The notes under the pieces: model-generated
What the model was told of the DNA's origin: nothing
The model's database searches: none
The model's input: the letters and a program-made list of their open reading frames with translations, nothing else
Assembly (NCBI RefSeq): GCF_006345805.1
Contig: NC_043004.1
Coordinates: 37,820,001-37,884,000, forward strand
Origin: Octopus sinensis
Lineage: Eukaryota
DNA length: 64,000 nucleotides
Direction: 5' to 3'
Translations under genes and position numbers: made by a program
Part shown: positions 52,401 through 55,641 of the stretch, one piece after another
Position numbering within the stretch: position 1 is the stretch's first letter
Layout: the number at the start of each line of letters is the position of its first letter

Positions 52401-53636
52401 GCAATTTGTCTAACCCATATCCACATGGGAATTGGATTTAAAATAATGATGGTAAAAACCAATGGAATACTAGACGTCTTTCAGCACTCTTCAAAGTTCG
52501 AAGCATGAAGGCAAGAATTTAAGAACTTTTAAAGTGCACGTGTTCAATGTGATTATGCAATTATCTACTATACACAACATATTTGTATTTGCTAGTGAAA
52601 CACACGTAAATATTATGTAGTTTGAGATGTAATAATAAAAAGACAAACTAAATGTCCGGTTAACTTCATTTGGGGAAGCATGCTTCGTGATTAAAATTAT
52701 TTCAATTTGCAAACTTTTAATTTTGTTCATAAATTTCTGTACGTTTCTTTAAGGTTCTGCAACAAAACTTAAGGATCCTCCATTAATTTAGAAGAAATAA
52801 TATTTCTTTAAGTATACCGCCAGTAAGTAATAAAATTTTATCAAAGTTAGCGGATTTAGGTAAGTTGGTCAATATAACGATCTTCGCTCGGGTTATATTG
52901 ACCGGTAAGTTCATATACTGTGAAAGGATAATCCTGATGTTAAGGGAATATTGCTCCGTCCGTGAGAGACCAACACAAATTTCTTGATTTCTATTTATTA
53001 ATTGTATCAATTTATCAACTTGGCGTTGAAAAACCCAGTTGCCCTCGATTGAAGTCGGTTATAACATCATGAAACGTCAAACAAGTTATAACGCTAGATA
53101 CAAATATAAAACAGAAATAAAAACAACAGTAAAACTGACAGATCTATAGATTTCTCTTGTTCAAGTACACGAATATCTTACTGGTATTTTATTAACATGA
53201 GTAATGAGTGATTACGTGAAGCTAGTGGAGTATGACCTCTATTACCTTGTAACAAGGGAGGTCAACATAGGGTGGTTACGAAGTACTAAAAAAATGGATA
53301 GGCAGAAATTATTTCACAAAAAGTAAAGTATAGAACTATGGTTAAAGAATGGTATTTGTGGCAGGTAAAATAGAAGCAAATAAACAATTTTAAACAGATA
53401 CATTGTGTCTATGATAAACCGTGACCGAAATAATTTAGAGGACATATTCGTAAGAGTACTTTTCGTTTGAACGAAAGAAATGATTCTAAAAAAATCAGTA
53501 AATGGTAGCTACAATACATTTTTTGCAACGATATGACATTCTTCAAGAATTGAGTATGATTTAAAACATTTGTTTCGAAAAGAATTAAAAAGAAAAGGTT
53601 GGTTTTTACCGGCTGTACAAACTTCAGAGAGGCCAT
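37338..53636 (-). CDS. ATP5PO: ATP synthase peripheral stalk subunit OSCP (subunit O), complete (8 coding exons, 209 aa)
   Basis: Exons 53636-53610, 51148-51104, 49056-48946, 47638-47566, 45353-45294, 42804-42692, 38027-37941, 37451-37338 sum to 630 nt, all GT-AG and in phase. Protein: [44 protein letters not shown]...ENGR...[13 protein letters not shown]...[21 protein letters not shown]...KQAV*. These are OSCP hallmarks with a presequence-like N-terminus. AATAAA on - at 37119-37124. Confidence 0.96.
37941..38027 (-). CDS. ATP5PO: ATP5PO exon 7 ([11 protein letters not shown]...ETK)
   Basis: 87 nt, AG/GT flanked. Confidence 0.95.
38372..38766 (-). mobile_element. Short non-autonomous Helitron, family A (395 bp), in ATP5PO intron 6
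   Basis: A|TCTTTATATATAAAAG ... cccgagcaacgccggccgatactg CTAG|T; shares about 240 bp of 5' sequence and the 3' terminus with 8453-9299. Confidence 0.88.
38926..39182. repeat. Fold-back of a short dispersed repeat (about 118-bp arms, 21-nt loop)
   Basis: Arms 38926-39043 and 39065-39182; a single copy of the same family at 1-90. Confidence 0.88.
39545..39810. repeat. Tandem array, about 2.5 x 101-107 bp
   Basis: gacctggtagaaa...gccaaatctccctcaaatcacacc recurs three times. Confidence 0.8.
39849..40316 (-). mobile_element. Helitron-like element, family B (5' end matches 7099 onward)
   Basis: A|TCTCTTATTATAAAAGGCAG start, homologous to 7099-7375; 3' end degenerate. Confidence 0.7.
40352..40748 (+). 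mobile_element. SINE family A, intact
   Basis: Head-to-tail uninterrupted copy, used as reference for the split copies. Confidence 0.88.
41491..42262 (-). mobile_element. 5'-truncated RTE-clade LINE (RT C-terminus, open frame) in ATP5PO intron 6
   Basis: [56 protein letters not shown]; short (AG)n tail. Confidence 0.92.
42692..42804 (-). CDS. ATP5PO: ATP5PO exon 6 (ALSENGR...[13 protein letters not shown])
   Basis: 113 nt, phase 1-0. Confidence 0.96.
43714..44088 (+). mobile_element. SINE family A
   Basis: Head-to-tail copy. Confidence 0.85.
44440..44730 (+). repeat. RTE 3'-UTR truncated copy in ATP5PO intron 5
   Basis: Same family, tail to the right. Confidence 0.85.
45294..45353 (-). 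CDS. ATP5PO: ATP5PO exon 5 ([19 protein letters not shown])
   Basis: 60 nt, phase 1-1. Confidence 0.93.
46290..47040. repeat. Two RTE 3'-UTR copies of different subfamilies in inverted orientation, ATP5PO intron 4
   Basis: About 46290-46625 tail left and 46640-47040 tail right. Confidence 0.8.
47566..47638 (-). CDS. ATP5PO: ATP5PO exon 4 ([24 protein letters not shown])
   Basis: 73 nt, phase 0-1. Confidence 0.93.
48946..49056 (-). CDS. ATP5PO: ATP5PO exon 3 ([20 protein letters not shown]...)
   Basis: 111 nt, AG/GT flanked. Confidence 0.96.
49164..49560 (-). repeat. RTE 3'-UTR truncated copy, subfamily B
   Basis: (CAT)n tail plus ~60-bp units. Confidence 0.75.
51104..51148 (-). CDS. ATP5PO: ATP5PO exon 2 ([15 protein letters not shown])
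   Basis: 45 nt, AG/GT flanked. Confidence 0.92.
53610..53636 (-). CDS. ATP5PO: ATP5PO exon 1 (MASLKFVQP)
   Basis: caccATGG Kozak context, CCG|gtaaaa donor. Confidence 0.85.
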
Positions 53637-53931
53637 GGTGCTTTGAAGGAGAGTGACAGGAAGTCTGTAGCACTCTTCTATATGAAGATGAATAAACTAA
53701 ATCGGCTGACAAGAGGAATGTATGGAAACGCTATTGTGTAATAATTTTCAATTACTGCTTTGTGAGATCCAGCAGTAATGTAAATTATACTGGCCTTTTT
53801 TTTTTTGAAATCATATATATATATATATATATATATATATATATATATTATATATATATATATATATATATATATATATAATATATATATATATATGTTT
53901 GAAGTTTTTGGTTGATGTACAGATTTAATAC

Positions 53932-54123
53932 ATATGAAAGAAAAAAGATGTTCAGAATGCTGGATGGTTGTAAAAATATATATTTATTTACATATCACAT
54001 ATTATTATTACTTCATATTAGCGCTAGTTGAAAGCGCTAATATGAAGTAATAATATGTAATATGTAAATAAATATATATTTTTACAACCATCCAGCATTC
54101 TGAACATCTTTTTTCTTTCATAT
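53932..54123. repeat. Near-perfect palindrome (94/91-bp arms, 7-nt loop)
   Basis: Arms 53932-54025 and 54033-54123; one mismatch and one 3-nt indel. Confidence 0.92.
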
Positions 54124-54389
54124 ATATATATTAGACAGAATGAGATAACAAATCCCACGCTGTGAGAGACATTTAAAATGAAATAGTCTTACAGCTGTTT
54201 TTGGGATATTATGGATATCCCTTCATTATAGACAGTGTGAGAAAATATTTGAGTTCGATATATATATATATATATATATATATATATATATATATATAAA
54301 GGGAAAGTTTACGAAAATAAACAAAAGACGAAGGCAGGTGGAGTACAAACAAACAAATGTATTCGTATAGCGCTCAGGAATAGAAAAAG

Positions 54390-54427
54390 TCTTTTACGTT
54401 TCGAGCCTACGCTCTTCGACAGAAAGA
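54390..54427 (-). ncRNA. Minimal type I hammerhead-like motif (non-canonical U at position 6) in a short PLE-like repeat
   Basis: UCUUU CUGUCGA A GAGC-GUAG-GCUC GAAA CG UA AAAGA; second copy at 34156-34192. Activity untested. Confidence 0.45.
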
Positions 54428-54685
54428 TACACAGAAAAAAAACAAGGAGAGAAAAAAGGAGAAAAAATATATATAATCATAAAAAGCTCATTTAGCTGAC
54501 TCAACTACACACACATCGTAAACCAAAGCATAGTAGTGTAATAAAGAGTCCTATCCAGTTGAAATTCAGTAAATCCATTTAGTGAAAATTATTTCATGAA
54601 ATGTATATAGAATATAAAGAAAGTTAGTTGGTATGAGATGAATATATTAAATACATTCATGTCATACCTCCTGCCTTTCTGATAC

Positions 54686-54855
54686 TCTATCTATCTATCT
54701 ATCTATCTATCTATCTATCTATCTATCTATCATCTATCTATCTACCCCTCTCTCTCTCTCTCTCTCTCTCTCTCTTCTCTCTCTCTCTCTCTATATATAT
54801 ATATATATATATATATCTATATATATATATATATATATATATATATATATATCTG
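54686..54855. repeat. Compound microsatellite (TCTA)n(CT)n(TA)n
   Basis: Seen directly. Many other (TA)n, (TG)n and (TATG)n tracts occur, e.g. 227-273, 26410-26452, 26903-26960, 53813-53896. Confidence 0.95.
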
Positions 54856-55021
54856 TAAAATAATATGTGACAATTATTCAATAGCCAAGATAAAACTCTG
54901 AGTTTCGGATGCCGAGGTGGAAATCCTCTATTTACATAATATTGAGGTTTCTTTCTTTCTTTTGTTATCTTACCGTTTTTACCAATATATATATATATAT
55001 ATAAAAGATTAAGACTCTATT

Positions 55022-55469
55022 CCTTAGAGCGTAGGCGAGAAAGATATGCCATAATATACATCTGGTATCGAGAGTTGCACAAATACTAGAACTGGGCGCC
55101 ACTGCATAGTGCTAAGGATTCCAAATTTGCCATCAAGGTATAGGACATGATACTGCAAGAGCCTGGGTTTCAGAGGACCACAGCTCTTCAATATCCTCCC
55201 GAAGGACTTGAGAGACCTGCATGGGATGGACGTAGGTGTCTTCAAAATAAAGCTGAACCTCTTACTGTCAAGTGTCACAGATGAGCCAACTTCTCGGCAG
55301 GAGGTGCAGAAGAGGGCAGCGGCATCAAACTCCCTCATGCACCAAATATCAATTCCTAAAAAGCATTCGTGAAGTAAAATTATGTAGCAACACCAAATGG
55401 CGGTGCCCCAGCATGGCCACAGCTCATGAGCTGAAACTAGATAAAATCAAATCAAATCAAATCAAATCA
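55022..55469 (+). mobile_element. 3' end of a CR1-group LINE with (AAATC)n tail
   Basis: LERRRERYAIIYIW, GPQLFNILPKDLRDL, FKIKLNLLLSSVTDEP, ASNSL motifs, then a short 3' UTR and tail. Confidence 0.75.
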
Positions 55470-55593
55470 TATGCTCTACGTATTTTCTATTAAGAGACAT
55501 GTTCCGTCATGAAATAAATTTTATAGCTTGTTTGTGCTACCATACTTCACATGTTCTTGCATGGCCACCGTATCAACAAAGTAGAGAGGAATC

Positions 55594-55641
55594 ATGCCTG
55601 GCTATCAATTGTTCTTAATTATGAGATCGGCATTAAATAGA
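55594..55641 (+). CDS. MRPS6: MRPS6 exon 1
   Basis: ATG CCT GGC TAT CAA TTG ... AAT AGA|gtgagt; 48 nt, phase 0. Confidence 0.85.

Follow-up and report, generated by a model that had tools for sequence, protein, structure and literature searches.

We found that the genes for two mitochondrial proteins, ATP5PO (OSCP) and MRPS6 (bS6m), lie head-to-head in a 64,000-nucleotide stretch of Octopus sinensis DNA (contig NC_043004.1, positions 37,820,001 to 37,884,000; the window), and that the same arrangement recurs in a second octopus, a chiton, a scallop, and an amphioxus. The two octopus genes diverge 5'-5', with 1958 bp from one start codon (ATG) to the other. Judging from the loci compared, the pair is of bilaterian age, dating at least to the protostome-deuterostome ancestor and lost repeatedly since. 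The explanation we consider best, and hold to be probable though well short of certain, is an ancestral bilaterian head-to-head pair with an entangled promoter region, whose spacer has been inflated in octopus and which is kept mainly by inheritance. OSCP is part of the peripheral stalk of ATP synthase and bS6m is part of the mitoribosomal small subunit; the partners are non-paralogous, as their Pfam families differ (OSCP, PF00213; Ribosomal_S6, PF01250).

ATP5PO is a minus-strand gene of 8 coding exons, with every intron GT-AG, as determined by tblastn probes and splice-site reading (Table 1). The assembled product of 209 aa matched the Pfam OSCP family (E=2e-47) and differed from the annotated O. 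vulgaris "ATP synthase subunit O, mitochondrial-like" (P0001) solely by T126I. The ATG has a good Kozak context, CACCATGG. The 9-codon first exon is genuine on comparison with relatives: it agrees with the annotated O. vulgaris N-terminus, and an OSCP exon 1 of 27 nt with a GTA donor is found in this octopus, O. vulgaris, chiton, and scallop, representing three mollusc classes. The expected presequence (VRQFATSS...LVK) comes from exon 2, directly before the conserved PPVQVFG. In intron 6, a 264-aa open frame (window 41501-42295, minus strand) resembles the C-terminal part of a long interspersed nuclear element (LINE) reverse transcriptase.

MRPS6 is a plus-strand gene of 3 coding exons, again with GT-AG at all splice sites. 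Its assembled product of 147 aa matched Pfam Ribosomal_S6 (E=4.5e-18) and was 99% identical to annotated O. vulgaris bS6m (P0121), with one residue differing. Both genes are single-copy in this genome, where whole-genome protein searches matched these exons alone. Orthology is further indicated by the best database matches, which are annotated OSCP and bS6m, and by intron positions common to relatives. Pfam family searches of the raw genome returned no match for either gene because the exons are too short. An earlier reading of the window from sequence only had placed the two ATGs and the first two MRPS6 exons, and the gene models confirmed all of them, together with the divergent spacing of 1958 bp. 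The absence of these MRPS6 exons from the open reading frame (ORF) track that accompanied that reading is trivial because they span merely 16 and 46 codons. A weak MRPS6-like match elsewhere in the assembly (G000:C9004:36780-36995), with 32% identity over residues 53-124 and two in-frame stops, may be a decayed fragment or noise.

For each species, called genes and Pfam matches were listed around the exact protein, with loci oriented to place the queried gene on the plus strand. Ranges were taken as coding sequence (CDS), ATG to stop, and this was checked by tblastn and by reading the start codons. The survey covered bilaterians only; MRPS6 homologues came from a five-species alignment, with mostly vertebrate results, and from a single octopus query, which gave two cephalopod proteins. 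In O. vulgaris, MRPS6 (minus) and OSCP (plus) were head-to-head with 1461 bp from ATG to ATG. The genes were likewise head-to-head in the chiton Liolophura sinensis (241 bp), the scallop Mizuhopecten yessoensis (145 bp), and the amphioxus Branchiostoma lanceolatum (192 bp, or about 246 bp if OSCP lacks the N-terminal extension given in its annotation). MRPS6 was rebuilt by exon stitching in every positive locus and had three coding exons in each, the first of 45-48 nt and the second of exactly 140 nt. A homologous 45-48-nt exon 1 is present in Lamellibrachia as well as in chiton, scallop, and amphioxus. Consecutive OSCP/MRPS6 locus tags, which show adjacency and not orientation, were found in the gastropods Nucella lapillus (ACOMHN_023608/023607) and Batillaria attramentaria (BaRGS_00005576/77) and in the freshwater mussel Potamilus streckersoni (CHS0354_032240/39). 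The sequence-only reading had proposed a bilaterian-age pair of conserved orientation and had pointed to scallop and amphioxus as places to look; the pair is adjacent and divergent in both, and the head-to-head loci in three mollusc classes and amphioxus support the proposal.

Mammals agree on adjacency. A published gene list for a human 21q deletion reads [quoted passage not shown] (PMC12652779), and a cattle study gives the order MRPS6, SLC5A3, ATP5O, ITSN1, CRYZL1 (PMC3689702). By these lists, nothing but long noncoding RNAs (lncRNAs) and the SLC5A3/MRPS6 unit follows ATP5PO in either species, and the human gene order given in the sequence-only reading is borne out. The human strands are taken here to be minus for ATP5PO and plus for MRPS6, with a gap of ~160 kb.

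Several lineages lack the pair, which counts against the explanation we consider best. The linkage was lost in all eight of the other taxa sampled, and any constraint on it is therefore dispensable. These negatives cover 10 kb around the queried gene; for the urchin and Lineus, just the first 10 kb is excluded. Within that distance, no pair was found in the annelids Owenia (upstream neighbor a GH99 gene), Lamellibrachia (with MRPS6 as query; an unrelated 68-aa gene upstream), and Dimorphilus (a kinase/PDZ/FH2 gene upstream), and no MRPS6 was found in the nemertean Lineus, in Daphnia pulex, in the termite Zootermopsis, or at either of two OSCP loci in the sea urchin Lytechinus. Searches of the negative flanks by tblastn with several MRPS6 and OSCP proteins revealed no hidden unannotated exons. 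In the teleost Mugil cephalus, mrps6 lies at a different locus, beside prosaposin (L016:10001-10333), and is intronless (333 nt, 110 aa). All teleost mrps6 matches were 108-119 aa in length, whereas standard tetrapod isoforms have 119-125 aa and the gar and Polypterus proteins 121 aa. Teleost mrps6 is most simply read as a retrocopy that relocated the gene, and the sequences suggest that this retrogene replaced the parental mrps6 in teleosts and broke the linkage. As a separate observation, the two Lytechinus variegatus loci (CM031018.1, 15.88 and 18.50 Mb, 2.6 Mb apart) encode an identical OSCP protein and are each followed by a GST gene; they are either the product of a segmental duplication or a haplotype that the assembly left uncollapsed.

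With the pair missing in most of the non-mollusc, non-chordate taxa sampled, the arrangement could in principle be a chance convergence or an artefact of assembly or annotation. We regard this as extremely improbable. The same neighbor, orientation, and exon structure were found in two octopus assemblies, chiton, scallop, and amphioxus; by our reckoning, random gene order would place a given gene as the divergent upstream neighbor in roughly 1 in 40,000 cases per lineage; and the randomizations of Irimia 2012 (PMC3514665) gave a false-discovery rate of <0.0002 for conservation across four lineages. Convergence is excluded: three mollusc classes and a cephalochordate share the neighbor, its orientation, and the intron structure, and in mammals the two genes are likewise adjacent.

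How the pair persisted is less certain. Only 145-241 bp separate the ATGs in chiton, scallop, and amphioxus, and therefore both 5' untranslated regions (5'UTRs) and core promoters lie within one shared region of <250 bp. An entangled bidirectional promoter region of this kind would have made the pair hard to split, and it probably gives both mitochondrial genes a common housekeeping expression, by analogy with HSPD1-HSPE1. The octopus spacer is a stretched form of the ancestral compact (<250 bp) promoter region; microsatellites and at least 4 pieces derived from mobile elements have enlarged it to ~2 kb. Since the octopus ATGs are ~2 kb apart with ~65% repeats between them, there is probably no tight bidirectional promoter there; the octopus pair is now probably served by two neighboring, physically separate promoters, with a linkage that would be inherited rather than actively required.

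The main rival of the co-regulation reading is that the pair is ancient but passively retained: a spacer of ~150-250 bp offers a tiny target for a viable breakpoint, there is no selection for co-regulation, and the mitochondrial theme is incidental. We think this tenable, though somewhat improbable. Many independent losses have occurred without obvious consequence, and genes for oxidative phosphorylation (OXPHOS) and the mitoribosome are generally co-expressed across the genome without linkage. A promoter cannot be literally shared over ~2 kb in octopus or over the presumed ~160 kb in human, yet the pair persists in both despite expansion of the spacer. This persistence cuts both ways, as it speaks against any need for a joint promoter while a small breakpoint target does not explain survival at such distances. 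Also in conflict with passive retention, conserved 5'-5' pairs are significantly co-expressed and far commoner than random gene order predicts (Irimia 2012, PMC3514665).

Promoter sequences lent little to a regulatory explanation. No k-mer common to the octopus, chiton, scallop, and amphioxus promoter regions exceeded shuffled expectation, which favors passive retention, and a scan of the same regions for NRF1, YY1, cAMP response element (CRE), Sp1, and ETS motifs found nothing above that expectation. The octopus spacer has a GC content of 0.32 and no CpG island or other compositional mark. An ETS-type core lies just upstream of the octopus ATP5PO ATG (Table 1), and CTTCC cores in the same orientation lie close upstream of the ATGs in chiton and scallop. 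GABP/NRF-2 is an established regulator of vertebrate OXPHOS genes; the octopus core would fit such control, and we treat the motif as a lead only. The human ATP5O promoter is reported to be bidirectional, its partner being the lncRNA LINC00649, which points toward MRPS6 in 21q22.11 (PMC8645989). This promoter may be a remnant of the divergent promoter of the ancestor.

We consider it unlikely that the OSCP-bS6m linkage is a selected regulatory coupling of bilaterian or possibly greater age, in which one compact bidirectional promoter would set joint output, a shared chromatin domain would keep the coupling after expansion, and LINC00649 would be its relic. The sequence-only reading had suggested that shared regulation may hold the pair together, a suggestion left unsupported by the absence of any above-chance k-mer, the loss of linkage in every other taxon sampled, and the ~2-kb, ~65%-repeat spacer in octopus.

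A further alternative is that the pair is held within a larger regulatory block or chromatin domain with neighbors like those on human chromosome 21 (CRYZL1, ITSN1, SLC5A3, and CBR). A 354-aa ADH_N/ADH_zinc_N gene, which resembles CRYZL1 in domain and length only, lies beside ATP5PO on its downstream side in Lineus (L013:15382-23363) and chiton (L006:18776-26309), and in Lineus it is head-to-head with a 1927-aa EH/SH3 intersectin-like gene, mirroring human CRYZL1-ITSN1-ATP5PO. In octopus, CBR1-like genes adjoin ATP5PO, and human CBR1/CBR3 share the 21q22 segment with ATP5PO and MRPS6 (PMC12652779), which suggests a wider chr21-like linkage. However, Lineus keeps its CRYZL1-like and ITSN-like neighbors without MRPS6 within 10 kb, scallop and amphioxus have different flanking genes, and no developmental regulator is involved. 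Octopus has no CRYZL1-like or ITSN-like exons in the 200 kb beyond ATP5PO or the 40 kb beyond MRPS6, and tblastx across 304 kb spanning the pair matched neither CRYZL1-like or ITSN-like genes nor any other foreign flank genes. An ORF listing, which by itself is weak evidence, showed no long SLC5A3-like ORF over the 38 kb that follow octopus MRPS6. We consider such a block very unlikely. The octopus CBR1-like (adh_short) exons are just downstream of ATP5PO at window 12810-25820 (minus), with a partial second copy on the opposite strand at 1955-4102 (plus), and an adh_short gene occupies the corresponding position in O. vulgaris (L005:30279+).

The pair adds another case to a known class of conserved divergent pairs. 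Irimia 2012 (PMC3514665) described 595 conserved ancestral microsyntenic pairs, most of them 5'-5', with that orientation and short spacers over-represented; HSPD1-HSPE1 is a mitochondrial example among them, with linkage lost in flies. By that operational definition, OSCP and MRPS6 qualify as a 5'-5' conserved ancestral microsyntenic pair, being adjacent in five lineages by the per-species count of that study (octopus, chiton, scallop, amphioxus, and mammals), which we count as three phyla. As with the co-regulated 5'-5' pairs of that set, the partners are non-paralogous, adjacent in distant lineages, divergent, closely spaced in compact genomes, and repeatedly unlinked in a lineage-specific manner. 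HSPD1-HSPE1 is similar in that both partners are nuclear genes for mitochondrial proteins, conserved 5'-5', with linkage lost in some lineages. However, HSP60 and HSP10 form one complex, and their human genes lie <1 kb from one another under a proven shared promoter, whereas OSCP and bS6m belong to different machines and are separated by lncRNA loci in human (over what we take to be ~160 kb) and by ~2 kb of repeats in octopus.

A second comparison is with mammalian bidirectional-promoter pairs, reportedly described by Adachi and Lieber in 2002 as having transcription start sites (TSSs) <1 kb apart. ATP5PO and MRPS6 are likewise divergent housekeeping genes, and the TSSs in chiton, scallop, and amphioxus necessarily lie within that distance, given the spacing of their ATGs at <250 bp. 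In contrast, the octopus TSSs are probably farther apart than 1 kb, with ~1.27 kb of repeats between the ATGs, and the partner of human ATP5PO is LINC00649 rather than MRPS6.

A literature search that did not extend to the supplementary list of Irimia 2012 found no paper naming ATP5O/ATP5PO-MRPS6 as a syntenic pair, nor did the supplements of Davila-Lopez 2010, Schmidbaur 2022, and Robert 2022 contain it. The sequence-only reading had pointed to a reported loss of ancestral microsynteny in coleoids; any surprise at retention in a coleoid is weakened by Schmidbaur 2022, which reports that a squid keeps 275 ancient metazoan microsyntenies versus 216 in scallop. The pair alters no current view of genome evolution. 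It is a clean, easily assayed deep microsynteny of two housekeeping mitochondrial genes, and a reliable anchor between octopus chromosome 8 and human 21q22. It also offers a natural spacing series, from <250 bp (scallop, chiton, and amphioxus) through a repeat-inflated ~2 kb (octopus) to a presumed ~160 kb (human), which could be used to test selection for co-regulation versus a small breakpoint target as the cause of 5'-5' pair retention.

Table 1. Coding exons of ATP5PO and MRPS6 and features of the spacer between them in O. sinensis (window positions)
Feature	Position	Strand	Remarks
ATP5PO coding exon 8	37338-37451	-	includes stop codon; tblastn and splice sites
ATP5PO coding exon 7	37941-38027	-	tblastn and splice sites
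ATP5PO coding exon 6	42692-42804	-	tblastn and splice sites
ATP5PO coding exon 5	45294-45353	-	located via annotated O. vulgaris orthologue
ATP5PO coding exon 4	47566-47638	-	splice sites
ATP5PO coding exon 3	48946-49056	-	tblastn and splice sites
ATP5PO coding exon 2	51104-51148	-	15-residue part of presequence; AG/GT sites; identical to O. vulgaris annotation
ATP5PO coding exon 1	53610-53636	-	ATG at 53636; encodes MASLKFVQP; GT donor
Divergent intergenic spacer	53637-55593		1957 bp; about 65% (~1.27 kb) microsatellite and dispersed repeat
ATP5PO-proximal unique segment	53637-53812	-	~176 bp; putative core promoter and 5'UTR
ETS-type core ACAGGAAGT	53656-53664	-	20-28 bp upstream of ATP5PO ATG; candidate motif, read from sequence
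(AT)43 microsatellite	53813-53896
Insertion absent from O. vulgaris	53897-54257		361 bp, inside (AT)n tract; foldback element like a miniature inverted-repeat transposable element (MITE) plus second dispersed-repeat fragment
(AT)20	54258-54298
Dispersed repeat	54300-54468		at least 284 candidate copies, 85-97% identity
Compound microsatellite (TCTA)n/(CT)n/(TA)n	54686-54854
3' end of high-copy dispersed retroelement-like repeat	55020-55445	+	also present in O. vulgaris
(AAATC)5 tail of retroelement-like repeat	55444-55469
MRPS6-proximal unique segment	55470-55593	+	~124 bp; putative core promoter and 5'UTR
MRPS6 coding exon 1 (MPGYQLFLIMRSALNR)	55594-55641	+	ATG at 55594
MRPS6 coding exon 2	60734-60873	+	140 nt
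MRPS6 coding exon 3	65728-65983 (window-equivalent; L001:1728-1983)	+	1.7 kb beyond window end

The spacer differs in length by ~500 bp between the two closely related octopuses. Its unique parts are 90-98% identical to O. vulgaris, and the block at 53300-53884, which holds the ATP5PO-proximal segment, is 97.8% identical. In the 361-bp insertion, the arms of the foldback MITE-like element (53928-54007 and 54048-54127) are 80 nt each and 98% complementary, and both repeat families are multi-copy; the genome holds at least 2260 first-look candidates. The insertion is absent from O. vulgaris and its families are high-copy, indicating recent mobile-element activity that differs between sister octopus genomes. 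The repeat at 55020-55445 has at least 3951 candidates; the 40 copies scored were 84-92% identical and mostly spanned the whole query. Neither a tRNA nor an Rfam family was detected between ATP5PO and MRPS6, and sub-threshold matches to microRNA families at 53988-54067 were rejected as merely the AT-rich foldback hairpin. Across the window, many short units resembling short interspersed nuclear elements (SINEs) carry a common 23-residue frame, for example at 44438-44707, 46186-46614, 57017-57397, and 62047-62250.

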